Shown here piece by piece: positions 3,787 through 29,471 of a DNA stretch of 29,471 nt (position 1 is the stretch's first letter; every line of letters begins with the position of its first letter). The position numbers and the translations under genes are program-made. The notes under the pieces are model-generated. The model was given only the letters and a program-made list of their open reading frames with translations, was not told the DNA's origin and did not search any database. Origin of the DNA: Amoeboaphelidium protococcarum X5 (lineage: Eukaryota > Fungi > Aphelidiomycota). The stretch spans positions 47,801 through 77,271 of the forward strand of contig JALDTO010000223.1 of NCBI GenBank assembly GCA_023515725.1. The letters are read 5' to 3'.

Positions 3787-4186
3787 AAGCAATTCAATTC
3801 TGATTACTTATGTTATTTAAAGACGGACAGTCTGGAAATTGCAAAGAGAAAACAATCAAGGGAGTGTAAAAGCAATCTCGTTGACATCAAAAGCGAGCAG
3901 ATTCAGCTTTCCAAACGCTATCACTTAGCATTACTGATATTCATATTGATATCTAGCCAAGTGGAACTCAAATATGAAATTTAGAGCTCAGCTAGTATGA
4001 CCAATGAAATACAATGCAATAAAGTACGCGTTAAATTTGACTGATTTACAATGCAACCTCGTTGATGGCGTCGCATCACTTGGCGGAATTTAAATTCTCC
4101 GTTTAAAATCTGACAGAGATTAATCTACATCTCTTCCACTAATAAGTTAAGAATATAAAATTTTTTCAAATAGAAGTTATAATATA

Positions 4187-4699
4187 ATGCACGTCTAACT
4201 CTTTTTGGTGTCTTTGGCCTCCATTGCTCATTGTGCTGTGGCCATCTCGGAGTAGACCAGGACCTTTGCTGACACTCTCGTTGATCTCCTCAACGTGGTC
4301 CGCCCTGAAACAAGATCGGTGTTTTGTTTGAATCAGAAGCTAATGGAAGCCGCTCAAGAATTGGCTGATATAGAAGCATCTGGTCAGTCATACGACCACA
4401 CTGATGGAAGAAATTTGTACTTTCCAAGTTAAGCTAATGGGTTCAATGGTACTACACATATTGTGTAGATTCTGAAGAACATTAAAACTCCGCAGGAAGC
4501 TTTCGACCAAGTTAAAGAGGCAATTTCCAGAGGTACGCGTTACAATTATGATTAGCGTTTCATTGGAGTAGGTTACAACGATGGACATTGCGTTGTATAC
4601 TTTGTCGCCAGTGAACATGAGCAATGCATGCCTTCCGTAAAAGATGGTACGAGAGTTCAGCCTACCTCAACTACTGCTGAAACAGCTGTTAACAATTGA
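4187..4699 (+). CDS. Secreted CAP/SCP (PR-1/YkwD-like) domain protein, paralog 1, 170 aa
   Basis: ATG 4187 to TGA 4697-4699. Signal peptide MHVqLFLVSLASIAHCAVA; CAP-like core LVDLLNVVR...CLNQKLMEAAQELA...RFIGVGYNDGHCVVYF...EQC. Confidence 0.8.
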
Positions 4700-5195
4700 T
4701 TGAAGAATTGAGATTCAACATCTTAATAGAGCCTTTAAAGTCATTGCTTCTATTCCAGTTTCTTCTCATATTTTTTATCTGTCATCATCACAAAAACTAA
4801 CGCGTGAAGGCTGTATTGCTTTATGTATCAGCGAACAAGCCATCCTATTCAAACGGCATCAACCTTAGATGTAGGTAGTATCGACAGATTCGACTATTCA
4901 GGGACCAAATTCAAATTGCAACTTCAACTTAGCAACTCAATAATCATACTAAATCGTTTACTATCTGTTCACAGCGGTTTCTCGCTTGCTAATGGCTTAG
5001 TTGAAACGTTGTCTATTCCCTCGGTGATGGTCAGGTAAAATTTTGTGCGTCATGCCGATAGATCAACATCGTTGCCATCTATCTTTCACCGAACTATCAT
5101 TAATCGCGTTAATTCAGAGTCATCGCAATCCGATAGATTTACGATATCTTCTTGAACAACTACATTGCTTATTTGCAATACTCAATTTTATTAAA

Positions 5196-5699
5196 ATGAT
5201 GCGTTTCACTATCTTACTGATCTGCTTGTTATCAGTGATCCATGCTGCTGCAATTCCAAAGGACACGAGAGTCTTTGCCAAGAGTTTGGTCGATTTACTG
5301 AATGCTGATCGCCCTGCCAATCTATCTTCATACTGTTTGAATAGAAAACTGATGGCACCTGCTCAAGAACTGGCCGAGATTTATGCTTCTGGGTAAAGTT
5401 ATGATAATAACGATGGTAGAAATCTGACTAGACCAATGTTTGTCAATGGTTTCATCGGTTATTAGGACGCTTATGGGCTTCAGGCTGACGTCGAGACTCC
5501 AGAAGAGGCCAAGGAGGGGATCAAGACGCTAACATCCGCATTTGCCCGCTTTGGATAAGACTTGCGTTTCATGGGAGTCGGCTTTAAGAATGGCGTCGTT
5601 GTAACGTACTTTGTCGGAAGTGATGTTGAAAAATGTTCGTATGGTTACGGGCGCGGTAAGGATTAAGGCGATCAGGGACAAGATTGCGATGATCAGTGA
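5196..5699 (+). CDS. Secreted CAP/SCP domain protein, paralog 2, 167 aa
   Basis: ATG 5196 to TGA 5697-5699. Signal peptide MMRFTILLICLLSVIHAAA; LVDLLNADR...CLNRKLMAPAQELAEIYASGqSYDNNDGRNL...RFMGVGFKNG...EKC. Collinear with paralog 1. Confidence 0.82.
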
Positions 5700-6188: not shown

Positions 6189-6770
6189 ATGAAATTGACA
6201 TTCGCTGTATCCACTGTTGTATCTGTTCTGTTGTCGACGCTGATCAATGCTCAGGCCGGCGCTTCCAATGATGCCACTTAAATGCTGAGCTTGATTAACG
6301 CTGTACGTTTTGATTATGGTCTGGATGAAGTGTGCCTGAATGCAAAACTTAATGATGCTGTCTCTCAATATGCTCAAGCTATGGCTAAGGCAAATAGATT
6401 TGAAACTTAGCTTAATGGTCAGTATGTTTCAGATCGCGTCGAAGCAGTCGGATTCGAAGGAGGCTCAGCAGCTCACGAGGCTTTAACAATGGGTCATTAG
6501 TCTGCAGATGATGCCTTCTAATCCATAATGGACGTACCATCTACAAGATCTATGGTTATGGATTCAAGCATTGAATTCGTTGGTGTCGGAATGCATGAAG
6601 GCTACTGGGATGTGATCTTCAGTTCAAGTCCCACAGAGAAATGTCTGGGGGAAGAAGGTGCATCTGACCAGTACGACGCTCAAATTCAGTCTAGTAATGG
6701 CACCGATGTGAACGCGTCAAATGCCGTTGGCTAAAACAGTACTTCTGATGGAATTGAATCCGCTATTTGA
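6189..6770 (+). CDS. Secreted CAP/SCP domain protein, paralog 3, 193 aa
   Basis: ATG 6189 to TGA 6768-6770. Signal peptide MKLTFAVSTVVSVLLSTLINA; MLSLINAVRFDYGLDEVCLNAKLNDAVSQYAQAMA...DRVEAVGF...FVGVGMHEGYWDVIF...EKC. This is the most canonical CAP pattern of the three. Confidence 0.86.
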
Positions 6771-6879: not shown

Positions 6880-8970
6880 TCATTCCAAGATATTAAATGT
6901 CAATGCACAAAGTACTACCATCAAGCCAACTATGTAAGTAGAAGACAGAGATTAGAATGTAGAAGTGGAGCCAGATACAAAATCATCTTCAGTGACGGAA
7001 GACGATAAAGAATCTCCCAGCGAATGTGACGCATCATTCTATTATTGCCCAACCACCGAGGATTCATTAAAAGTACCAGCCTGATACAAAGACCCGTCTG
7101 ACGCATCAAGATCAAGCAGAGGTGCCATCTCTATGAGCTAATCGTAAGAATCAATAAAGAGAACTGACATACCCATAGTCATATGAGAATTGATATGACA
7201 GTGCATTGGCCACACACCAGGATTATCAGCCTTAAATCTAATGACTCTCCAACCACAAGGTGCACCAGGTTTACCAGTGGTATTGGTTTGCAAGTTGGAT
7301 GCAAAATCATGTTCATAAGGATACACCGTCACAGTGTCGCGAAAGAGAGGATCTTGCAAGTTGGTAGCCTGAGCCACCTCAGCACTATCCAATTTATACT
7401 CGCCAGGACCAGATGCAATATCAAAGACGTGATATCCGTGTAAATGAAATGGATGCTACTCGCATATACCATTCATTGCCACAGTATTCTGCAAAATCAC
7501 CTCAATAGTTCTCTCGAAATCAATCTCGAATATCACCGCTTTCATTGCCTCCTCCGCAGACATCAACGTACCATTGGAATGGACACCCGATACAGCTGAT
7601 GACAACACCTTGTTCATATGATCTCGACCTTTGAAGGCAGCATGAAGAGCCGGCTCGCTCAAACTCATCATATCAAATGCACCCCCGTTTATTAACCACT
7701 TGGTCTTGTTTTCATAGGTGCCATCGGATTTCAAAACAGGCAGTAGACTCTGCTGCAAATGTAAATGGATACGCTGCATATTAGAAGAGTCCTTTAAAAT
7801 TGTGGCCTCCTCAGATAGATCAATAGCTGGCTTCAGGTGGCTGAGAATCCAATTAGGATCGCTCTTGGTATTGTTCTGAGTGAATAAACTCTCCACTTTA
7901 ACAGAAGTAATATCTTCAGCACCATCTTTATAACTCAGCATTGCATAACCAATAGGTCCAGATTTACGGTAGGCAACCTGTGCTCTAATCATATACTTAC
8001 CAGCAGCTGATGGATCACTCATACGCACCAATACTGAGTACCTCTGTGCAGAATTGATCTCAAGTTCAGTTACTCGAAATGGCTGCACGTAGATACCATC
8101 AACCTCAATTATGGTCATCTCATGCAAATCCATACTCACTTTGATATAGGAAAGCGTGGAGGCACCAACAATTCTAAAGCGATACACTTTGTCCTTCTCC
8201 ACCTGAAATGACTCCATGCTGGCAAGAGATTAATTGCACTTGGAAATATCACTAGAGCCACCAGAAGATGATGATAGAGAAGAGCAATTAAACTAGCCTT
8301 TACCATTAAACAGGATAGACTGAGGATCACCAATCCACTTGAAAGGAGTCATCAGTAACCCGCTGGTCATATCATCTTCTTTAGCATGGAAATTATCACT
8401 CAGCATCAAGACGCGCTCTTCATCATAACGATACTACTCTCCCAAAGTATCTACCAGATGATCAACTCCATCATCTTCAATGATAATCGGACCATAAAGC
8501 TGTTCACCAGTCTGCATGAAATGAGCATGATACCAATATGTTCCACCAGGCTCATTCACGATATACTGCTTGATAACATAGCTCTAGCCAGGTGCAATTG
8601 GATATTAAGTCAGAAATGCAGCACCATCATTCTAAGGTGTCAGAATAGAATCTAAACCATGCAAGTGGATAGCAATCTTATTCCCGGAAGCCATCTGATT
8701 AGTAATATTCAGCACTAGAGTATCTCCTTTACGAACACGAATCGCCGGTCCAGGATACTGGCCATTAATCAGAATCAGATGCTTCTCATAACCATCAGGA
8801 CTAGCGTAGCCATCAGTCAAGACAAAATCGTACTTGGTGGTATTGCCATTCAATTGCACACCATACTTTTACTACAGCTACTGAGACAATGCCTGCAATT
8901 AATCAGCAGCAACCAAAGAAGCAGCACCTATCAAAGCAACAAAACAAGAAAGCTACTTATACCAAATCAT
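6880..8970 (-). CDS. Multicopper oxidase, L-ascorbate oxidase/laccase-like, 696 aa, secreted, with probable GPI-anchor signal
   Basis: ATG 8970 to TGA 6880-6882 in one frame. Signal peptide present. Four Cu-binding motifs: IHLHG, WYHAH, qHPFHLHG and ADNPGVWPMHCHINSHMTMGM. Also INGQYPGP and KWIGDPQSILFNGKGqFNCS. Ends in a Ser-rich spacer plus the hydrophobic tail YIVGLMVVLCALTFNILE. Confidence 0.93.
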
Positions 8971-15408: not shown

Positions 15409-16141
15409 TCAATAGATTTTCCAGTCTTCAAGTCAAACTCCTTTGTAAATTAAATTAGCTAAAGATTACTTCTAATATATCTATATAAGAGAAAAAGGAC
15501 CAAACTATACTAAAGGATCAGTGATAGAATTCTATGGCAACTGCATATCGCCGTCACTTGATTCGAGTCTATTTTTAGACAGTCAGTCAGTTAGATAATC
15601 AGTTAATGGGACAGACGCGTTACATCTTATCTGAGTTAAGCAGACAATGAAACAATGTACGAACAGCAGGTCAGTAAAAACAGGGACCTTATAGTACAGG
15701 GTCAGCGTATTGCTATGAGAAGTAGTGTAATGCAGTATAATCAAAGGTCATCAAGTCTTCAAATCTACCTAATACCTGTTCGCGATTCGGTACTAGCTTC
15801 TGATTAATGCACTGTTCTTTAGTTTCTTATCGTTGCACTATACTCACCAAGATTAGCTATTATGGAGAAAAATTAATAATATATGGCCAACTCTTATTTA
15901 TATCATGTCATGTGCGCGTTAGTAAAACGCGTGTGTATCAATTTAATCGAATTGTACAGACTATTTTGGGCCTGCTGTAAAAATAATGCATCATTTGGAA
16001 CATGTTGATGTTTATCTTGCTTTATTAATTAACGCTGAATGCTCAACCTTTTTGTACGTGGTTGAGAATGGCAATGTTAAGAATACTGTTGATGATGAGA
16101 TTGATCATGTTCATTAGGTCGGTATTTCTATAGTGTGCAGT

Positions 16142-16152
16142 CTATATTTAGC
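16142..16152 (+). promoter_or_regulatory. CTATATTTAGC TATA-like motif upstream of gene A
   Basis: The identical 11-mer recurs upstream of every family member: 16142, 18458, 19453, 22414 and 24764. Confidence 0.5.
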
Positions 16153-16260: not shown

Positions 16261-18435
16261 ATGTAGATTACAGCTTATTCTGTAGTGGTAGCAATAATTT
16301 CGCTGTTGGCTGCCGCTGTAGATGCAGGCCCACTGGTGTTGACTGATAGAAAGAATGTCGGCGCAGTCTATAGCGGAGTAAGTAAAAAGCTTTACGTGTA
16401 TGGTACTTTTGAGGGATACATTGGGTTGATGGCTACAGATCATACTGTAACCCAAGTGATCGGATAAAGCGGAGCTACTGATCTTTTCATTGAGGAGTAC
16501 TGTGATGATGGCACTCTGCAATTTCAGTTCATTGTCGCTGGTCTAAGTAGAGAGTATGAGCCCGTTGTGTCTCTGAGTGGAAATTAGCTATTTCTTGGGG
16601 CAACTACCGCAAGCTTGTCGTATTTTAGTTCGCTTAGTCCTTATCCGCAAAGTTTGCTCCTCTTCGGTGAGTTATGCATTGCCCTTCAGTCTCCTTTAGT
16701 AAACAAGTTCATTATCAGTGCCACAACCCCTATTTCTTTTGAATGGTCTAGATGTATATTACCGCCGCCTCACACATAGGTGGTGCTTCTCGATTTGTCA
16801 TATTATGTCTCAGATGGCGATCAAATGCTCGCTATAAGTTATGCACCCCAAAGAGAGACGAGAAATACGTGGATTAAAGATTATTCTTTGCTGTAGTATA
16901 ATATTGGCCTTTTAATGTTTTCTGGTGACTCACTTGCCACTGGTTCTTAGTACAATGCCTCGTAATATTAATAACAGTCGCTAAACTCCAATGGCGATAT
17001 TGTATCTTTTCTAAGTGATGGCTATCAATTGAAGAAAATTTTTGGCCCAACTGCATACTCTGCGAATATTAATATGGCAAGTGTCGGTGACTTTAAATGC
17101 ATTGGTGTAAATTGCTTTGTGCTGGGCATCTACAATTCACAAGCTGTGTTATATTATAACGGTGGCAATTCCTACTCACCAGTCATCACTTTTGGTGTTG
17201 CAAATATTGTGTAAAGTCTCTACTATGATTAAAGTTTGAACGCAATGGTGGTCATGGATCTGAAACCCATTGGCAGTTCGTCTGGTCGTCTACTTTTTTA
17301 CGGAGTCAGTACGGGTTCGAGATTCAAGATCGTCTATATATACATGGGTGTCACTCTACAATTTCAGGATGTCCTATCGTTCGGAATTGATTCTGGTAGT
17401 AGGAAAGGCTTGATTGGTATGTCTACGTATGTAAGCAAAGCTGCGACGTTCACTTACAGTGATGTCTTGACGACTACAATTAGAACATCTACAACTACTA
17501 CTACGACTACGACTACTAAGACTACTAAGACTACGACCACAACCACGACAACTAGTACTACTACTACGACGACGACAACTACTACATCCACTACAACAAC
17601 AACTACGACCACTACCCCGACAAGTAGAATAACGACATTGACTAGTACAAGAACTACCTTGCCTTCGTCTGCCGCTACTACTTAAACTTCTGCTACTACA
17701 ACGTCGTCCAGTACTGCGTCAACGACTGGTGCAAGTGCTTTGAACCACACGCAGTCAACCACATCTGCATCGCTATCTTACTCTGAGACTACTTCATCAA
17801 TTGTTTCTGGATCTACACTATCGTCCGTCTCTCAATCTATGAATACGACATCCTAAGTTATGGGTCCTACATCAACTGATCAAGCCTCTGTGGCATTAAG
17901 TGCTCCTTCCGTCAGTAACATGGTCTTTTCTACTTCAGTAATCCAATAACCTACGTCAACCGATGTAAGTGAATTGTACTCTCTATCTTCTTATTCAGCT
18001 ACGTTAGCACCTACCTCTGTAAGCTTCTCAATCATTGGTAATGTTGAAAGTGTTTCCGTTTAATCTTTGGGTATAGATTCATCGTCAGTAAGTGGCCAAA
18101 GAAGCTAATCTATCTAGTTTGAATTCTCAGATGTTCTTATTGGTAGCGTCTAGACATCTACAATAAGTGGTGGTTCAGGCTTCTCTGATAAGTCACCTGA
18201 GAATTAAGCCCTGGTATCTTCACCTGTGTTTCTGTAGTATGTGACTGTAGCAGGAGCTGTGGTTGTCATTGTTGGAGTCTTGGGAGGTCTCTATAAACTA
18301 AGATAAAATAGACGCAAACAGTAGCAAACTATGTGGCAGTCAAGCAAAAGTGTTCTGACATCATAGTCTTTCATGCTGAATAGGACTATCCCGCTTGAGA
18401 TTACTGCTAATACGTCGTCGACTGTTTAACACTGA
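16261..18435 (+). CDS. Receptor-like type I membrane protein A (beta-rich ectodomain, Thr stalk, TM, short tail, no kinase), 724 aa
   Basis: ATG-TAG start (MqITAYSVVVAIISLLAAAVDA signal peptide), TGA-free to 18433-18435. TM YVTVAGAVVVIVGVLGGLY; tail KLRqNRRKQqQTMWQSSKSVLTSqSFMLNRTIPLEITANTSSTVqH. Confidence 0.88.
17470..17710 (+). repeat. Poly-Thr coding tract in gene A
   Basis: ACT/ACA/ACG/ACC runs. Confidence 0.85.
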
Positions 18436-18598
18436 AATATGGCATTCTGATTGATGGCTATATTTAGCCCATGGCTATGGTATGGGGATTAACATTGTTA
18501 CGAAAGCCTTTGTCTTTTATGAAATGAAATCAATAGCAATTTAATTGTTATACTGTAATTAAAAGATTTCCGCTTAGGATTAATTAACAACAACAGAA

Positions 18599-18670
18599 AT
18601 GACATTGTATCATATGTTGGCTCTCTTCACGCTTTTAGGTGCTTTTACTCCATAGGCCTCGCGAGTATGA
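18599..18670 (+). pseudogene. Truncated duplicate of the 5' end (signal peptide) of receptor kinase D
   Basis: Reads MTLYHMLALFTLLGAFTPqASRV*, versus D (24926) MTLYHMLALFTLLGAFTPqARAq. The upstream DNA (TTTCCGCTTAGGATTAATTAACAAC) is also shared. Similarity ends at about 18665. Confidence 0.85.
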
Positions 18671-19452
18671 GAGGACCTTACTAATTACAGTTTGAATCAG
18701 TTAAGTGTTTGTCATGGAGCATATATGCGTCAAAGGATAGCATGTTCCACCTTCTTCTTCTTCTTTACCTTCTTGACTTTCTAGCAATTAGAATTATCTC
18801 CCACAACAGAGCTGTGCGTAGTCTCGTCACTTCTTTAACAGATAAGATTGTAGAATAGCATAGATGTTTATGATTTGGCAGAGGATCTAGCGGGAAGGGG
18901 GGGGGTAGCTCAACTCTACACAGTATGTAGAGGATAGACAGATCTATACTCATCGAATATATTGTAAAATGAGGACAATTAAAGACTAAGAGACATTTTT
19001 ATATATAACGCCATTTTAACGTTCCTGTATAATCTTTCCAATATCTTCAGACGCGTACTGTATCCAAGTACAACAGATTATAATTCAACTTGCGATTAGT
19101 TTAGTTAATTTAAAAGTTTAACATCTTCGGATTATGTCTTGCAATTCACGCTCCAGATAAATACAAAATTCTCATTTTAGTCAAAATTAATTAAATGTAG
19201 TTTGAATAGTAGTAGCTTGGACTATATAATCTGAATTTTAGTTGAGCATGATTGCGACAAGACGTAATGGACCAGACGCGGTTGAGATAAAAGATTAGTG
19301 CGTTATCCCAAGCCAAATGGAGACCAGATTGGTGCATTGGAAAACTAAGTGTTGCTTTTTTATCACAGATCCAGTTTAAACTAATTGAGCCATTTAGCGC
19401 ATCCCTGTGCTTTAGTGTAGGTAGTGAACTTCATCGCCCTTCATTGCGTTAT

Positions 19453-19463
19453 CTATATTTAGC
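19453..19463 (+). promoter_or_regulatory. CTATATTTAGC motif upstream of gene B
   Basis: 155 bp before ATG 19608, within an upstream block conserved with A and C. Confidence 0.5.
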
Positions 19464-19607
19464 ACTGTGGCGGGCATATCTCTGTGATTAAGATACTACC
19501 ATCATTTCCCTTCGATTCTTCTTCTTCTTATCAGTCACACTTTTCATCGTCAGCTATTGATTAATTGGCCAATAGAATAAAGAGATTTAGTTAATCAAGA
19601 ATAGGTG

Positions 19608-21716
19608 ATGTAGATTATTGCTTTTTCAGTAGTGGTAACAATAATTGCGCTGTTGGCTACCGCTTTAGATGCAGGCCCACTGGTTTTGACTGATAGAAAG
19701 AATGTCGGCGCAGTCTATAGCGGAGTTAGTAAAAAGCTTTACGTGTATGGTACTTTTGAGGGATACATTGGGTTGATGGCTACAGATCATACTGTAACCC
19801 AAGTGATCGGATAAAGCGGAGCTACTGATCTTTTCATAGAGGAATACTGTGATGATGGCACTCTGCAATTTTAGTACATTCTCGCTGGGCTTGATGATGA
19901 ATATGAACCTGTAGTATCGCTGAGTGGAAATTAATTGTTTCTTGGCGCTACTACCAGGAGCATACCGTACATAAGTGTATTGAGCCCTTACCCACGCAAT
20001 TTGATATATTATGGCACTGCGTGTACTGGCTCCCGATCTGTATTAGTAAACAAATTTATAATCGATGCTGGTAGCTCAATGTCTTTCGAATGGTCTAAAT
20101 GCATTTTCCCCGCTGGTTTCACGTAAGTTTTATTGCTTGATCTGGCTTATTACGTCTCTGGTGGTTTCCCAATGCTCGCCGTCAGTTATGCCAAGTCGTA
20201 AGTGACTAGAAATTCTGTGTTCAAAGACTATTATCTTGATCGATATAACATTGACTCATCCGAATTTGCAGGTACAATTGGATTGCTTGGCTTTTATTAC
20301 AATGCCTCATAATATTAATCTCAAGTCATGAGTACTAATGATATTGTGTCATTTCTTAGTAATGGATAATCCTTAAAGCAAATATTTGGCAATCCGCTGA
20401 CCTTGAATAATTTGCCAATTGCTAGCGTTGGAGACTTCAAATGTGTTGGAGTACGATGTTTTGTGCTTGGTATTCACTATTCCTAAGCTGTGCTGTACTT
20501 TTACGATGGTGTACGATTCTTGCCTGCTATTACTTTTAGTGGTGCGGATATTGCATTAAGTCTCTTCCATGACCAAACTTTGAATGCAGTGGTAGTCATG
20601 GATCTGAAAACTTCCGTTTCGGCTTCTGGAAGGCTGCTTTTCATAAGCGTCAGCACTGGACAGATTTTAAAGACTGCCCTATTGTATACAACTAGCATCG
20701 TCTCTTTTCGGGATGTTCTGTCCTTTGGAATAGATCCCTCCAATAAGAGAGGCTTGATTGGTATTTCCACCATGTCAAGAACAGGCGTAAAGTTTACATA
20801 CAGTGATATCGTGACTACTACTACTACAACAACAACAACATCGACTACAACAACAACAACGACTACAACCACAACTACAACTACTACTGCTACTACTCCT
20901 AGCACCACGGCTACTACCACTACAACTAATTCAACTAGGATGACCCCTACCTTAACTGTTAGATCAACGACTTCAACAATCTCTACGAGCACGCTATCCT
21001 CAGCTGCAAGTGTATCTCGAAGCACCATCACAAATACTGCTACCTCTATCATCACGTCAACAAGTCGCTCAGAGTCAACTACATCTACTGCATTGCCCTC
21101 TACTTTGGCCGTAGTATCCTCTAATGTGACCATTTAAGCATAAGGTTCAACGTCATAACTATCCTCAAGTCTCTTTAATCCTTCTGTCAGCAGTGTGATT
21201 TACTCTACCTCTGTATTCTCAGTAAGCTCATTCATTGCAGAAAGCGCGTCTAGTTCACATGTGTCGGCATCTGCCTAATCAGCTAAATAATTGACTGTTA
21301 CCGTGAGTTCCACTTATGAAGTTGTTACCGAAAGTATTTCGTAACAGTCATTTGGCTCAGAGTCCTTGTCGCGGAGCCAGTCTAATGTGATCATATACTC
21401 TATAAACTCTATAGATAACATACAGACATCCACGATAAGAGATGATTCTAGTTTTACTGACGAGTCACCCGAGATCCAAGGACTGGCTTCTTCTCCTGCA
21501 TTTCTACAGTATCTTGCTGTAGCTGGAGCAGTTGTTGTTATTGTCGCAGTCCCTGGCGGCTTTTATAAACTGAGATAAAAAAGGCGCAAGCAGCAGTTGT
21601 TATAGCAGTCAATGTGGCAGTCCAATAGAAACTTGGAGACTTCATAGTCTGTCATGTTAGACAGAACAATTCCTTTGGACATTACAGCGAATACGCAATC
21701 TACTGTTTAGCACTGA
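19608..21716 (+). CDS. Receptor-like type I membrane protein B (paralog of A and C, no kinase), 702 aa
   Basis: ATG-TAG start at 19608, TGA at 21714-21716. Joins track ORFs 19632, 19935, 20490 and 21366 in one frame. TM YLAVAGAVVVIVAVPGGFY; tail ...MWQSNRNLETSqSVMLDRTIPLDITANTQSTVqH. Confidence 0.88.
20813..20945 (+). repeat. Poly-Thr coding tract in gene B
   Basis: ACT/ACA runs. Confidence 0.85.
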
Positions 21717-22413
21717 GATTTGGCAAACTGATCTGTATTCAACCACATTGCTTTGGGAACAAGAATGGTGATAAAGCGCGTCATTAAATTTCTTACAATA
21801 GCACTAATAAAAGAGGGGTGGCTTCTGATTTGCTTCAAATCTCTGAAGAGCGTACAAGATAGTGATGAGTTTTTGGCGATGGTCATATGCTTCCATTGCT
21901 GAGGAGTATGAATGAACGTGTACGTGATGAATCTGATGAAATAATTTCACTTTCGTTTGCAAACTACACATTTAAAATTTGAAGCGTATTATTCTAGTTA
22001 GTTCAAATAGAGTTGCGCTCAGCCCACTTTAAGAATAAAGTCTGAAAAACTAAGTACGCGTTTCTTCACGAGGCTCAACCAAGTTGTGGCCTGAGACTCT
22101 AAGAAACGGGTCTACAAGATGCAAAGCTGCGTTCTTTTAAAAACCGGCAATAGCACAGGTAGTATTCTGGATCATGTTATGTTGCTTAAGCTCTCACTCT
22201 CGATCTAACGAGCAAGAATGGCATGTTGAGCTGAAACCGTGTTGACGTGTTTCTAGCACGAACTCACTCTTCTTATTACACAAATGTACTTGTTATATCT
22301 CATACAGTATTCACTTCACCGTCTTATGTTATGCTTAATATGGCACCGCAAAAGATGAACGCCCATACCTTTTTGCGCTAGATGAAGGATGCTAGAGCTC
22401 AACTTATCGCTGT

Positions 22414-22424
22414 CTATATTTAGC
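22414..22424 (+). promoter_or_regulatory. CTATATTTAGC motif upstream of gene C
   Basis: 156 bp before ATG 22570. Confidence 0.5.
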
Positions 22425-22569
22425 ACCGTTGCCGGCATATCATTGTGATGAAGATACTACATCATTTGCCCTTGGAATCTTCTTCTTCTTATCAGCCACA
22501 CTTTTCATCATCAGCTATTGATTAATTGGCCAATAGTATAAAGAGATTTAGTTAATCGCAGAGTAGTTG

Positions 22570-24741
22570 ATGTAGATTATTGCTTTTTCAGTAGTTGTAA
22601 CAATAATCGCTTAGTTGGCTGCCGCTGTATCTACAGGTCCACTTGTGTTAACTAATAGAAAGAATATCGGCGCAGTCTATAGCGGAGTTAGTAAAAAGCT
22701 TTACGTGTATGGTACTTTTGAAGGATAGTCTGGATTGATGGCATAAGATCGTGCTGTAACTGAAATAATCGGCTAAAGTGGAGCATCTGATTTTTTCATC
22801 GAAGAATATTCTACTGTTGGTTAGTTACAATTTCAGTACATTGTCGCTGGCCCTAATGGCGAAAATGAACCTGTTGTATCTCTGAGTGGAAATTAACTGT
22901 TTCTTGGTGCTACTACTACAAGTGCGGAAGCACGTTCTTATCTAAGTTAGATTCCTTTCGGCTCGGGATGTTTAAGCTCCCAGTCTATAATGGTGAATAA
23001 GTTCACACTAAGTGCTGCAAATCCAATGGTCATCGAATGGTCGCGATGCATTTATCCGGCTGCTGATAATACATAAGTTTTATTGCTTGATCTGGCGTAT
23101 TATGTCCAAGGCTCTGTCCAAATGCTGGCTGTGAGTTATGCACCGTCAAGAAATACGAGAAATTCACTGATCAACAATTTTTCTCTTAGCCATTACAACA
23201 TTGGCTCAGGTAATTTCACAGGTAGCCAAAGTGCGTCTGGTTCTTAGTACAATGCCTCTTAGTATTAATCACAAGCACTGAGCTCTGGCACTAATGACAA
23301 TATTGTATCTTTTCTAAGTGATGGGCTAACATTGAGAACAATATTTGGACCTGCTTAATACTCTGCTAATATTGCAATGGCAAGTGTCGGTGACTTTAAA
23401 TGCGTTGGTACAAATTGCTTTGTACTGGGCATTCACAATTCACAAGCTGTGTTATATTATCACGGTGGCTCTTCCTTCTCTCCAGTCATCACTTTTGGTG
23501 TTGCAAATATTGTGTAAAGTCTCTACTATGATTAAAGTTCGAACGCAATGGTGGTCATGGATCTGAAAGCATCTGGCAGTTCATCTGGTCGTCTACTTTT
23601 TTACGGAGTCAGTACGGGTTCAATAGTAAAGATTGCCTTAGTTTAAACATCTGTTACTGTTAAATTCACTGATGTATTGTCTTTTGGCATTGATTCTGGT
23701 AGTAGAAAAGGATTGATTGGTATGTCTACGTATGGAACCACAGCGGCGACGTTCACTTATAGTGATATCATGACGAGTACAACTACGACGACTACTACTA
23801 CTACCACCACAACCACAACCACGACAACTAGTACTACTACGACAACGACTACAACGACAACTAGTACTACTACGACAACGACAACTAGTACTACTACTAC
23901 AACGACGACAACAACGACCACGACCCCTACAAGTAGAATAACGACATCGACTAGTACAAGAACTACCTTGCCTTCATCTGCAGCTACTACTGAAACTTCT
24001 GCTACTACAACGTCGTCCAGTATTACGTCAACGGTTGGGACAAGCTCAATAAGCCGCACATTGTCGTTTACATCTGCCTCGTTGAGTTCGACAAAGACGA
24101 CTTCATCAATAGTCTCATCATCAAGTTTTTCATCAGTTTTGCCATCGCTGAATGCTTCATCCTACGTAATGGTTGCTACATATACTAGCCAAGCCTCTCT
24201 AGCATCAAGCACCTCATCTCCTTCTGGAAGTAATGTGGTTTAATCTACTTTAATTATCTCATAACTGGTGCCAAGTGATGTAAGTGAATTGTACTCTAAT
24301 TCAGCCACGTCAATAACGGCCTCTATTAGCTTCTCTCTTATGGTTGATGTAGAAAGTATCTCCGTGCAATCTGTGGGTTCCGATTCACCCTCGTTTACTG
24401 GTTAAAGAAGCTAATCGACCCAAATTGCATTCTCAGTAGTTTCTTTTTCTGGCTTCTAGACGTCTACAGTTAGTGGTGGCTCAAGTATCTCTGATAGGTC
24501 ACCTGAGAATTAAGCCCTGGTATCTTCACCTGTGTTTCTGTAGTATGTGACTGTAGCAGGAGCTGTGGTTGTGATTGTTGGAGTCTTGGGAGGTCTCTAT
24601 AAACTAAGATAAAATAGACGCAAACAGTAGCAGTCTATGTGGCAGTCTGGCAAAAGTCTTTAGACATCATAGTCTGTCATGCTGAACAGGACTATCCCTC
24701 TTGAGATTACTGCTAACACGTCGTCGACTGTTTAACACTGA
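22570..24741 (+). CDS. Receptor-like type I membrane protein C (paralog of A and B, no kinase), 723 aa
   Basis: ATG-TAG start at 22570, TGA at 24739-24741. Same ectodomain scaffold (KKLYVYGTFEG, EPVVSLSGNqLFLGATT, EWSRCI, SVGDFKC.G..CFVLGI) and nearly the same TM/tail as A. Confidence 0.88.
23770..24020 (+). repeat. Poly-Thr coding tract in gene C, with repeated ACGACAACTAGTACTACTAC units
   Basis: The unit ACGACAACTAGTACTACTAC occurs three times between about 23821 and 23900, indicating slippage expansion. Confidence 0.85.
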
Positions 24742-24763
24742 GATATGGCATTCTGATTGATGG

Positions 24764-24774
24764 CTATATTTAGC
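24764..24774 (+). promoter_or_regulatory. CTATATTTAGC motif upstream of receptor kinase D
   Basis: 162 bp before ATG 24926, in otherwise dissimilar flanking sequence. Confidence 0.45.
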
Positions 24775-24925
24775 CAATGGCTATGGGGATTAACATGGTT
24801 ACGAAATTCTTTCTCTTTTATGAAATGAAATCAATAGTAATTCAATTTTAATAATTCAAGAATAATACAATTCAATTTGAGTCATTAAAGAATTTCCGCT
24901 TAGGATTAATTAACAACTACAGAAA

Positions 24926-27900
24926 ATGACTTTGTATCATATGTTGGCGCTCTTCACGCTCTTAGGTGCTTTTACTCCATAGGCTCGCGCGTAGGTGGAT
25001 TTAACTGTCAATAGGGTGAATTATGAGTCTTTGTACTACGCTGCCAATGGAAGGACATATATGTGCTCAACTTTCACAGGTAAGCCAAGGCTTTAAAATG
25101 ATGTCACGTCTGCTACGAATTCATTCATCGGGAAGAGTGACAAGACAGACATTATGCTGGAGGAGTTTGACTCCAATGGCCAGTTGATTTTTCGCCTCCT
25201 CTTGGGTGGCACTAAAGAGGACTATGAGCCTGTTATTAGTATAGACGAGGTGAGTGGAAGATTGTATCTAGCTGCAACTACGTACAGTGGCGCAGATACT
25301 AACAGCTAGAATGATTTCGTGTTTGGGTAAGGTTGTGTTGCCTCCTCCAAATCTGCCGTTTTGGTTAATATGATACAATTAGATCCAAATGGAATCAGCC
25401 CTATGTTGTTCAAATGGTCTTAATGTATTTCGTCTTCAAATGCTGTAGCTGTGGTAGATATAGTGGCCAGCCTGCTCGATTCTTAGCGAATCTTTCACCT
25501 TCTGTTTATCGAGGGCACGTCTAGGTTGACAGGAGTTTCGAGCAAGTATATTTTGCAGACTTATAATAGCAGCATCAGCAGTCTTGATTAGCTATAGAGT
25601 GTCACCACATTCTATGTAACCGTAGCCACTAAACCTGATTAAACCTTTATCAGCTAAGATGAATAAGTGCTGTTTGCTACTTGCGATGGTTTAAATTTAT
25701 TTACTGCTCGAAGGTCAATGTGTACAAATACGTCACCTTGTACTTCTTCTATCCTTACAGGTAGCGTGACTGCTCTCAAAGGTCTGAATTGTTATAGCAG
25801 CGGTTGCTACGCGTTGGTCGACCTTTGGGTCTAATATTCTCCTTAATTTCCAGCTGTGGTGCCTCTCGGTGGATAAGCAGCTCTATTATATATCAGTGCG
25901 TAGTCTGCTTAGGTACAATAGGTGTTCTACTAGAGTGCTATACAATCGGCCGCTGCTTTTTATCTCTCTACGGAATCGTCTATAGTATTAACTGGTAGGC
26001 AAAGTACAGGCACTTACTCTGGAGTCACAATTAGCCGAAATGTAGCCGATGGTATTTTATCAATCGCTGCTGCTTTCAACTCTTCAGTGAAGACTGAAGC
26101 AATAGGAATTGGTGGAAGTCAATCATCTGGTGTAGTCGTTATCGGTCTCTTGAGTGATGCTCAGCAAAATCTTATCCAGAGGATTACTTGGCCACTGGTA
26201 ACTACTACTCGAACGACCACTACTTCTACAACTAGAAGCACCTCAACGACTACCTCAACTTCACTATTTGTTACTCGAACTACTAGCTCAATTTGGTTAT
26301 CTGTTACTCCAACGACTAGCTCAACCTCGTTATCTGTTACTACAACAACTAGCTCCACTTCATTGACTGCCACTTTAAGGACTAGCTCGACGTCAACAAC
26401 ACTCAATATAGTCACATCGAGCCCTTCTACAGTTACAACTCCAAGTACAACTTCTCTACCAACATCCTCAATATCGTCGACACTTATTGGTTCTGTAGCA
26501 ACAAGTTCTAGTCTGCTTGAAGTTTCTGCTTTGCCCACTTCGCTCATATTCTCGACTATTGGCTCCACTTCTATTGGTATGTCATATTTGTCAGCTTCGC
26601 AGTAATCATTTGCGTCGTATTAGTCGGCGGGAACAACCAGTGATCTTGGTCTTATGGTGTCCTCATCTACTCCTGATGCATCTACCATCCATAGCTCTTT
26701 TGTTTCATCGTCAGTCATGTAGTCATCCCAATCTGATAAGAATTAGCTTGAAGCGTGGTCTAGTCTAACGTTAGTGACGCAGAAAACTACCTCTTCTCAT
26801 GCACCATAATTGTAAAGTTCTGCATCTATATTATCGACATTGTCAGATCCTATCACATTTGGATTTGGTTAAACATCGTAAGCCTAAACTAACGATGTCC
26901 AATTTTCTTTACATGGTCATGGGTCAATACATTTGAGCCTATCACGGACAACTTACACTGTTATAGTTGGCGATGGCGGATCTTCCAATGCGGAGGTTGG
27001 AAATGGGATCCCATTTTTGATGATCGCTATTGCCTCTTCTGTTGGATTGATGGTTGTACTTCTTATGTTTGCACTGATGCTATTATACAGAAGAAGGAGG
27101 TAGTAGTAAAAGAAGCTACATTCCTCAAGGTTGGCGCTGCAATAATCTGTCGCTTTAATGAACTCTGGTAATGCAAATGGAGGAGATACGTACATGAACA
27201 CTACCATAATTCCAACCAATGATTCTATATATGGCGCCAATAAAATGTCCATTCCTGGATATTTGGCCATGATTCCTGGAGTCCATTTTGCAATAGTCAA
27301 GAAAATCTCTGAGGGTGGTTTCGGCACTGTGTACGAAGGGAGATTAACTAGTCTCCAGCATTAGTAAAAGATCGGATCGGATCTCTGTGCGATCAAGGTT
27401 GAGAAATCTTTACAGCTACCTCCTGATCAGAGACACGAGTAAGACGCGGCTTTTCTATAGGAGGTGATGTTGTTGAATCTATTTGAGCACAATCCTAATA
27501 TCGTCAGTCTAGTCGGTTTCTCCACAAATCCAAATACAATCGTGATGAAGGTGTACTCTGGTGGCAGTCTTAGTGATTTACTTTTTGCGCCTCAGACGGT
27601 CGATCTGTATTCAATTTCCTTGATGGTCTCCCTGTTTAAGGATTTACTGAATGCTCTTGTCGACATTCATAAAGCCAAAGTTGTGCATCTTGATTTAAAG
27701 CCTGGCAATGTACTGTTGAGCTTTTCCAACAACAATAATAAAAGTGGCAATAATGTTCCTTTGTCAGCCGTCTTGTGTGATTTTGGAGCTGCTAAACTCC
27801 TGGTAAACAGTCAAGATCTTATCAAGGGATTTTAGAAGGCTAAATTGTAAGGTGTGTCATTGTAGTACGCTGCTCCGGAGTACATTTAGCGTGTGTTGGA

Positions 27901-28246
27901 GATAACATCTAGACAAGAAGAGTCTGCTGACGTGAATCATACATCAACCACTATGTTCACAGATATAAACACCATGGAAGAGTAAAAGATTGATATTTAT
28001 GCGCTTGGCGTAGTCGCTTACGAGATGTTTATCCGTCAGAAGTGCTGGACCATCCCAGCATAAGACGTTGTGGTGTAAGTGCAGGCAGGCGTCAGGCCAC
28101 TTATTCCTCAATTATCACCGCTCCAATCTGTGAATGATCCTCTTGTGGTGAAAACTATCATAGATTTAATTCAACGCATGTGGCATCAAGAAGCTGTCAT
28201 CCGTCCTACCGCCGAAGAGGTGCTATCTATCATCAGTCCACTTTGA
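24926..28246 (+). CDS. Receptor-like protein kinase D, 1106 aa: signal peptide, ectodomain homologous to A/B/C, Thr/Ser stalk, TM, TKL-like kinase
   Basis: One TGA-free frame from ATG 24926 to TGA 28244-28246. TM IPFLMIAIASSVGLMVVLLMFALMLLY followed by RRRR. Kinase motifs: ISEGGFGTVY, CAIK, FLqEV, HNPNIVSLVG, HLDLKPGN, DFG, YAAPE, DIYALGV, MWHQEAVIRPT. Confidence 0.93.
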
Positions 28247-28347: not shown

Positions 28348-29471
28348 TCAGTAGTAATCTTGGTACTGACCGTAATTGTCATCGTCCTCATCCAGTTCTT
28401 CCATTTCCCTCATTTCTTTGGTGTCTGCATCTTCACCATGCTACAGACTCTGGTCGACAACGTACAAAAGATCATGCAAAGATTCTTCATTATGAATATT
28501 GAGAGGAATGAAATTGACAAGTCCAAACTCGTCTATCAAATCCACTAGTCGCTTGCTTAGTTGGGCAAATTGCGATGATTACGACTGGTTGAGCCGCTCC
28601 AACAATAAGGACGTATCAGTCTCTAGAAATCGGTCCAGTTGAACTTGGTCTCTTCTACTTTCCACTAATTGTGCCTCTTCTTCATCAAAAGTATTAGCAT
28701 AACCACTTTTAGGAGCCTCTGGATCTATATCAACAGGAACTCCTCCTGATGTATTAACATGTTCATCAATATCCTCTTGATCCACATCACTGCCGCATTA
28801 AGCCAGTAGATTATCTTCATCATTCGACGCGTCAGAGCTAATCATTGACATCCAAGGATTAGAAGTGGAAGCTGATGTAAGCAACTCTCCCGGACGCCCT
28901 TCAATCAGATCCATTTTACTCAACACATTAACGTGTGGTATCTACAACTAGATCATGCAACTCATTGCAGCCAGTGCTCCAGTAAAAAACTTTGGCGCGT
29001 CTGTGACAAACGATGATTCCAGCAGATAGACTGCACAACACTGCAATTACAAGCGCGATTACAGCAGACCGATAATTGTCTGTACCACATTGCTATATGT
29101 AAATAACTCCAACTATCCCGGGAAGTCTATAATGACATATTCATCCTGCAAATCGTTACCAATCTCTTCCTCAAGCCAGTCAAATTCTTAAATCAGATAA
29201 TTCATCGCGTAAACCAGCCCACCATTAGGACCGTATTGCAACTCATCCATCACATCAGTTACCGTGATCAATTCACGTATATCAACATGAGGCTCATAGT
29301 AAGTGTCCTCAGCAGCGGGATCCAAATTCACCATCAGCACGGGTCGCTTACACTATCTGATATGATTAGACATTGCCAGACAGTAAGTAGACTACACATA
29401 GAATTTACAGATTAAATGTCAAAAGCTGTTGATACTATACATTCTCAAATATACAATCATACCTTTCCTGC
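28348..29471 (-). CDS. GPN3: GPN-loop GTPase 3; 5' end lies outside the window; intron at 29392-29462
   Basis: AGK|STYC P-loop split by the intron; [41 protein letters not shown], DFPGqLELFT, [37 protein letters not shown], qHGED; TGA at 28348-28350. DPAAE and KFF.GAL.AM favour GPN3 over GPN1 or GPN2. Confidence 0.92.
29392..29462 (-). other. Spliceosomal intron (71 nt) in GPN3
   Basis: GTATGA...TGTGTAG on the - strand. Removal restores GCA GGA AAG TCT ACT TAC TGT (AGKSTYC). It is the only intron I needed to invoke in the window. Confidence 0.88.

Follow-up and report, generated by a model that had tools for sequence, protein, structure and literature searches.

Three kinase-less receptor-like genes, kept by purifying selection, stand in tandem before a receptor kinase gene with a homologous head in the aphelid Amoeboaphelidium protococcarum X5. 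The three genes, A, B and C, and the kinase gene D lie one after another on the + strand of a 29,471-nucleotide stretch (contig JALDTO010000223.1, positions 47,801–77,271; hereafter the window), and a second receptor kinase gene, E, lies on the other side of A. A–C are maintained receptor-like proteins under purifying selection; they are not relics. We tentatively favour the reading that they signal through a receptor kinase, with D the first candidate, and hold its chance to be a little short of even. A promoter box found before all five genes (before E as a variant) may mark them as members of one regulon.

We translated the window with genetic code 6, in which TAA and TAG specify glutamine; long open frames appear in it only if both codons are read in this way. 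The resulting A and D proteins are identical to those in the NCBI database. Each of A, B, C and D is a single open frame that ends in TGA.

Architecture and homology of the receptors

A–C share a common plan: a hydrophobic N-terminus or signal peptide, a head of about 380 residues, a stalk, one transmembrane (TM) helix and a tail of 46–50 residues. Translation confirmed this plan, which a preliminary description of the window had given together with the order of the genes. The stalks of A–C are 229–251 residues long and 53–58% Ser+Thr; stalk length across A–D is 229–268 residues. The TM helix carries GVLGG in A and C and a small-xxx-small pattern in B and D. This is the architecture of a receptor-like protein, with an ectodomain, one TM helix, a short tail and no signalling domain. 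A matched neither the WSC domain nor any other Pfam family.

D has the architecture of a receptor-like kinase: a signal peptide, an ectodomain, a single TM helix and a kinase domain (Pkinase E 3e-29, residues 789–1101) in which the Lys, the catalytic Asp, DFG and APE are all present. The kinases of D and E are both non-RD, with HLD in D (HLDLKPGN) and HCD in E, and both keep the catalytic residues. They are 27% identical to each other. The E head is unrelated to the A–D heads; its Kelch_2 match (E 4e-4) falls just under the cut-off. A–C had been described as kinase-less, and a tblastn search of all gaps with both kinases returned nothing under E 0.6, which rejects a kinase remnant or a hidden exon downstream of the three genes. 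We also considered and rejected a splice of C onto D: no joint was seen up to position 25200, and coverage continues past the C stop and then drops.

The A–C heads are 60–70% identical to one another. They are 23% identical to the D head over 360 residues (E 2e-14), and BLASTP between A–C and D gives E values of 6e-12 to 1.5e-17 over residues 29–168. The profile alignment proposed at the outset, of A–C against the D head, scores 74 bits over about 315 positions. The N-terminal half of the head carries this similarity (z ∼30 against shuffles). The C-terminal half alone is not significant (z 0.7–2.5; hhalign E 0.07); a Cys pair in common and the predicted fold are its only links to D. Two Cys pairs align across the head family. 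On these alignments the A–C and D heads are homologous, anciently so; this is firm for the N-terminal half, and the likeness first seen by eye holds there and not for the C-terminal half on its own.

The head family has nine members in the genome: five short kinase-less proteins, two D proteins and two copies of a kinase-less mucin that we call F. The three architectures form three well-supported groups on long branches of an unrooted tree, and the branch between the A–C and D heads exceeds three substitutions per site. The head tree being unrooted, we infer the loss of a kinase from the wider kinase family. A piece of D has 128 kinase matches in the genome, many of them in tandem. Mucin F has a Ser/Thr stalk of about 3,000 residues, one TM helix and a 130-residue tail without a kinase, and is unlinked to A–D. 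It is also found on a 7.4-kb contig of run SRR845265. We found no other copies of the A–C TM helix and tail in the genome, and no dispersed copies of A–C. Outside A. protococcarum we found no relatives in JGI metagenomes, GTDB genomes or plasmids, and none in word-index protein searches, which are insensitive and length-limited. Proteins were searched whole where an NCBI entry existed, as for A and D, and otherwise in pieces. A profile search was dominated by bacterial-type repeat proteins that could mask aphelid or chytrid relatives, and a PDB sequence search returned chance matches only.

The heads probably adopt an SBBP-related β-propeller fold, for which our model is of moderate confidence. 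A profile of the 70 best-conserved head positions retrieved 4,292 proteins, nearly all multi-repeat, and the multi-repeat matches that we checked carry SBBP or DUF5122 propeller repeats. SBBP-type similarity is confined to the N-terminal 100 or so residues of the head (the first two blades). The AlphaFold model of the A head is all-β (pLDDT 67, pTM 0.64; residues 206–268 poor); it matches β-propellers at Z 13–15 with no standout, and SBBP clusters at TM-scores of 0.61–0.62. The D model is poor (pLDDT 52), and its first half also matches propellers. Neither A, D nor pieces of them reach the Pfam cut-off for SBBP (PF06739). The genome has 20 or so true SBBP places elsewhere, A–D not among them. 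Many lie about 2 kb upstream of kinase matches, which suggests that A–D are divergent members of a wider propeller-receptor set. Two SBBP matches, at C212:507098 and 511755, have no listed kinase nearby and are possibly more kinase-less propeller proteins.

Selection, transcription and history of the array

The preliminary description had taken A–C for working genes, and this is borne out: they do not evolve neutrally, and B and C appear to be transcribed. The ratio of nonsynonymous to synonymous substitution (dN/dS) in the head is 0.24–0.36 among the A–C paralogues and 0.52 for A against its homeolog, and in the TM helix and tail it is 0.08–0.23 in six of seven pairs. Neighbouring genes have values of 0.03–0.31, so the heads evolve faster than their neighbours yet stay constrained. 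Between homeologs the E head and kinase have values of 0.10 and 0.02. E is far better conserved between homeologs than A–D, and the promoter region and box are common to E and A. Mean pairwise difference among A–C is 0.17 in the TM helix, 0.19 in the tail and 0.32 in the head. Within the head, variation is larger in loops (0.41) than in strands (0.21) and is highest (0.62) in a 27-residue loop, residues 117–143, which by strand order in the model probably lies on the top face of the propeller. Positive selection was not found: the highest head value is 0.79, in the C-terminal half of the A head, and one stalk comparison gave 1.13 (confidence interval 0.65–2.49).

In two public runs the contigs cover B and C at a depth that approaches or exceeds 1,000, and in a third at 50–140; in the gaps the depth is 0–140. 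At the start of D it is lower than over B and C. The three runs are from another strain, their library type is not on record, and the stretch covered B, C and the D start. The coverage looks RNA-like and suggests that B, C and D are separate units; contig depth ranks genes unreliably.

The 23.6 Mb genome holds the locus twice (contigs C221 and C192), which fits the genome duplication reported in A. protococcarum (PMC10608142). The D homeolog is annotated as MIR68_006329. The same place in a second strain is MP228_010791 to 010794, with MP228_010791 the A orthologue. A kinase-less array precedes D in all four haplotypes of the two strains, with two copies on C192, three in the window, and three and at least four on the two haplotypes of the second strain; in the last, L042, an assembly gap hides more copies. 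The comparison of copy number that had been proposed shows variation among these four haplotypes, with no dN/dS above 1. An annotated 190-residue gene before D in GCA_023515745.1 (L042:9020–9140) is a C copy of which an assembly gap leaves the stalk and tail, and is ruled out as a new small gene.

Divergence along the array is patchy. A and B are nearly identical over codons 1–68 (synonymous divergence, pS, 0.08), pS is about 0.7 over residues 111–320, the rest of B is the most divergent, and on L042 one stalk is common to three copies. The pattern is that of gene conversion together with unequal crossing-over, with a variable core kept between the exchanged parts. A stub of D follows A in the window, A' on C192 and one copy on L042. 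It indicates that A arose by duplication of a unit that combined a C-like gene with the beginning of D. All complete copies keep open frames of about 700 codons despite near-saturated synonymous divergence. Between the strains, B and the principal head types hardly differ (nonsynonymous divergence mostly below 0.05 for B and A). Compared with haplotypes C192, L041 and L042, the N-terminal head of D (24992–25435) has pS 0.15–0.5 and the kinase 0.01–0.3; the higher head values may reflect alleles of greater age, or else recombination within a hybrid genome.

A shared promoter box

The 11-mer CTATATTTAGC lies 119–162 bp upstream of A, B, C, D and the D stub in both strains. The nine A–C and D promoters that we compared have no other word of at least six letters in common. 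On C192 the box of D has one substitution that preserves the consensus. The window holds seven box sites, against 0.9 expected. A general core-promoter element was ruled out, with 311 sites in the genome and 311 in the control.

The box matches CTA(T/A)4TAG, the consensus of the MADS-box factor Rlm1 (PMC13284371), which is common to MEF2 (PMC8836261) and is the motif of MEF2/Rlm1 regulons. Yeast Rlm1 drives cell-wall genes downstream of Mid2 and Wsc1 (PMC13284371, PMC8836261). MADS genes are present in the genome, and control of the locus by an aphelid MADS factor is putative. The shared box adds support for placing A–E in one regulon. That regulon may be wider. The box lies 2.0–3.4 kb upstream of 11 of the 49 other kinase matches on the listed contigs (0.8 expected; 2 downstream), with a clear peak at 2.4–3.1 kb. 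This test is based on coordinates, and its nominal P of 2e-10 overstates the association, because the distance window was chosen post hoc and neither tandem copies nor homeologs are independent data points. A MEF2/Rlm1-type regulon of aphelid receptor kinases is possible on this evidence.

The features are collected in Table 1. Genes of ordinary kinds flank the locus. Between them, three small related proteins with hydrophobic N-termini (26–45% identical) are encoded on the + strand at 4004–4699, 5052–5699 and 6189–6770. By eye they are CAP/SCP-like, and one stop-free piece gave no Pfam match. A laccase-like multicopper oxidase of 696 residues with a hydrophobic N-terminus lies at 6880–8970 on the − strand; its Cu-oxidase domains were confirmed.

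Table 1. Features of the receptor locus (window positions unless a contig is named)
Feature	Position	Strand	Remarks
RNA polymerase second-largest subunit	1–1805	−	flanking, ordinary gene
Gene E, receptor kinase	15408–11305	−	1367 aa; kelch-like head, Thr stalk; divergent from A
CTA(W)4TAG variant	15569–15578	.	161–170 bp upstream of E; kept on C192 and L041
CTA(W)4TAG box	16142–16152	+	119 bp upstream of A
Gene A	16261–18435	+	724 aa
Gene A, parts			signal peptide ∼aa 1–22; predicted propeller head 23–403; Ser/Thr stalk 411–655; TM with GVLGG 656–678; tail 46 aa
Head of A	16327–17469	+	predicted SBBP-related β-propeller; most variable loop aa 117–143
TM and cytoplasmic tail of A	18226–18435	+	best-conserved part of A–C
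CTA(W)4TAG box	18458–18468	+	upstream of D stub
D-start stub	18599–18667	+	D promoter and signal-peptide codons (first 23 codons); tblastn E 2e-8
CTA(W)4TAG box	19453–19463	+	155 bp upstream of B
Gene B	19608–21716	+	702 aa; architecture as A
CTA(W)4TAG box	22414–22424	+	156 bp upstream of C
Gene C	22570–24741	+	723 aa; architecture as A
CTA(W)4TAG box	24764–24774	+	162 bp upstream of D, 23 bp past C stop
Gene D, receptor kinase	24926–28246	+	1106 aa; head aa 23–425, stalk 268 aa, TM, kinase
GPN-loop type ATPase	28348–29373	−	flanking, ordinary gene; ATP_bind_1 in second strain
Mucin F	C98:687970–698901 and C158:79408–90378		3,650 aa; kinase-less, A–D type head

Readings of the locus and known systems

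We propose that an old duplicate of a D-type receptor lost its kinase, and that its juxtamembrane segment survived as a tail. It would then have multiplied through unequal crossing-over and gene conversion, which maintained three head types, A, B and C, with differing loops. A MEF2/Rlm1-type MADS factor would turn A–E on together at one life stage, which we guess to be attachment or encystment. The variable heads would bind an external surface ligand through their loops, and the conserved TM helix (with GxxxG) and tail would relay the signal to a receptor kinase. As a candidate partner D comes first, being linked, sharing the box and having a similar stalk length and a homologous head; a partnership with D is plausible. 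Purifying selection is strongest in the TM helix and tail, which supports such a relay. The A–C tail weakly resembles the juxtamembrane segment of D (z 3–7), with the tail ending at about the site of the pre-kinase motif of D. Plant receptor-like proteins (RLPs) couple to the kinase SOBIR1 through TM GxxxG motifs and need their short tails (PMC13425104), and the non-RD class of kinases has an association with recognition receptors (PMC8463890). In aphelids, the dispersal cell attaches to its host cell and encysts (PMC3975115); a tie of the locus to either step is a guess drawn from the life cycle. The fullest form of the proposal, a convergent module of RLPs and a receptor-like kinase (RLK), built from a bacterial-type propeller, acting through D, set by a MEF2/Rlm1-type switch and choosing an algal surface, we regard as unlikely when taken whole.

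Several points weigh against signalling through D. Tandem origin alone suffices to explain the linkage of A–C to D, and the box, which precedes many other kinases, marks a regulon and not a pair. The match of the tail to the juxtamembrane segment is weak (6.8 bits) and driven by basic and Gln residues, and GxxxG is common in TM helices generally. Mucin F carries the same head and has no receptor kinase linked to it. B and C are covered several times as deeply as the D start, and this, poor measure as contig depth is, would be expected of an abundant coat protein more than of a 1:1 co-receptor. With no dN/dS above 1, diversification driven by host recognition or allorecognition lacks its signature of selection.

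These points bear on the alternatives. A–C could be stand-alone adhesins or wall and contact sensors, with D no more than the neighbour of their origin; the tail would recruit a cytoplasmic partner, perhaps a Rho guanine nucleotide exchange factor or a trafficking or cytoskeletal adaptor. Their architecture is that of Wsc1, Mid2 and the signalling mucins. Mucin F, kinase-less with the same head, keeps its TM helix and tail under strong constraint (dN/dS 0.04), the RNA level of B and C is apparently above that of D (a weak indication), and the box fits the site of Rlm1, which acts downstream of Mid2 and Wsc1 in yeast (PMC13284371, PMC8836261). Against this, A has neither the WSC domain nor another Pfam domain, the tail is weakly like D and not like a known sensor tail, and A–C never occur apart from D in the four haplotypes or as dispersed copies. 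We hold this role to be less likely than not, yet almost as good a reading as signalling through a receptor kinase; the suggested partners are tentative.

The preliminary description had also offered A–C as decoys. As decoys or dominant-negative brakes they would bind the ligand of D, or D itself, without signalling; the homologous head, the missing kinase, the same box and a possible excess over D would all fit. A shared ligand is unlikely between heads that are 23% identical and separated by more than three substitutions per site, A–C are not near-copies of the D head in the way that SLG is of SRK or Xa21D of Xa21, and a pure decoy needs no tail as its best-conserved part. We consider this role improbable. 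An allorecognition locus, in which D would recognise the A–C of a different cell as ligands, has a model in the linked receptor–ligand pairs of Dictyostelium. The genes are linked, polymorphic in copy number and mosaic in their alleles, and the D head is more divergent than the kinase between haplotypes (synonymous divergence 0.48 against 0.26). Over the four haplotypes there is mosaicism and copy-number variation with no dN/dS above 1, the two strains have almost the same B and main head types, hybrid genomes are mosaic anyway, and co-variation of A–C and D alleles is putative; we think this reading a poor prospect. That A–C are functionless debris of receptor-kinase duplications is very improbable indeed. 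A true relic, the D stub, lies within the array and parts of the A head approach dN/dS 0.8 between homeologs, but open frames of about 700 codons, dN/dS well below 1, a conserved box and transcript-like coverage largely refute it.

Host recognition by aphelids, which damage algal mass cultures, is not described in the papers that we searched. The locus supplies named candidates, with three head types, one kinase and one promoter box, for how an algal parasite may sense or grip a surface such as the host wall. An expansion of receptor-like kinases in aphelids has been published (Mikhailov et al. 2022, Curr Biol, pmid 36126656, as cited in PMC10608142). D and E, with signal peptide, ectodomain, TM helix and kinase, are such kinases, and to this extent the suggestion of a possibly undescribed system does not hold. 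A–C differ as kinase-less tandem paralogues with a divergent SBBP-type head and a MEF2/Rlm1-type box. We found no account of kinase-less paralogues, this head or the box in aphelids in the open literature, outside which lie most subscription journals, including the 2022 paper.

The likeness to plant RLP/RLK clusters proposed earlier stands for architecture and tandem linkage; there is no homology to a plant family and no close-copy ectodomain. Plant RLPs such as Cf-4/9, Ve1 and RLP23, which act with SOBIR1, also have a variable ectodomain, one TM helix with GxxxG, a short tail and tandem arrays with exchange, and GxxxG is found here in A and C only. A–C carry a predicted propeller on a mucin stalk and not the leucine-rich repeats, or the LysM or lectin domains, of plant RLP ectodomains. 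The plant partner kinase is an unlinked common adaptor, whereas D is a linked kinase and a candidate partner of A–C. SRK/SLG and Xa21/Xa21D likewise encode a kinase-less ectodomain relative beside the kinase. SLG and Xa21D are close ectodomain copies without TM helix and tail; A–C are 23% identical to D and have both, conserved. The locus is real; it appears RLP/RLK-like in its working plan and lies outside every plant family. Bacterial and archaeal SBBP proteins (PF06739, DUF5122) resemble the A–D heads in the first two blades and the predicted fold; A–D fall below the Pfam model, with similarity over about the first 100 residues.

The fungal wall sensors and signalling mucins Wsc1, Mid2, Msb2 and Hkr1, taken with the Rlm1 regulon, share with A–C the head, Ser/Thr stalk, TM helix, short tail and CTA(W)4TAG box. 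A–C differ in having no WSC, Mid2 or other shared domain, in their proposed descent from a receptor-kinase family that yeasts lack, and in being multi-copy and variable. The presence of the box suggests that aphelids, a sister group of fungi, may control their receptor repertoire with a MADS factor of the type behind the yeast cell-wall programme, and it bears on the rise of fungal surface sensing after the loss of receptor kinases.

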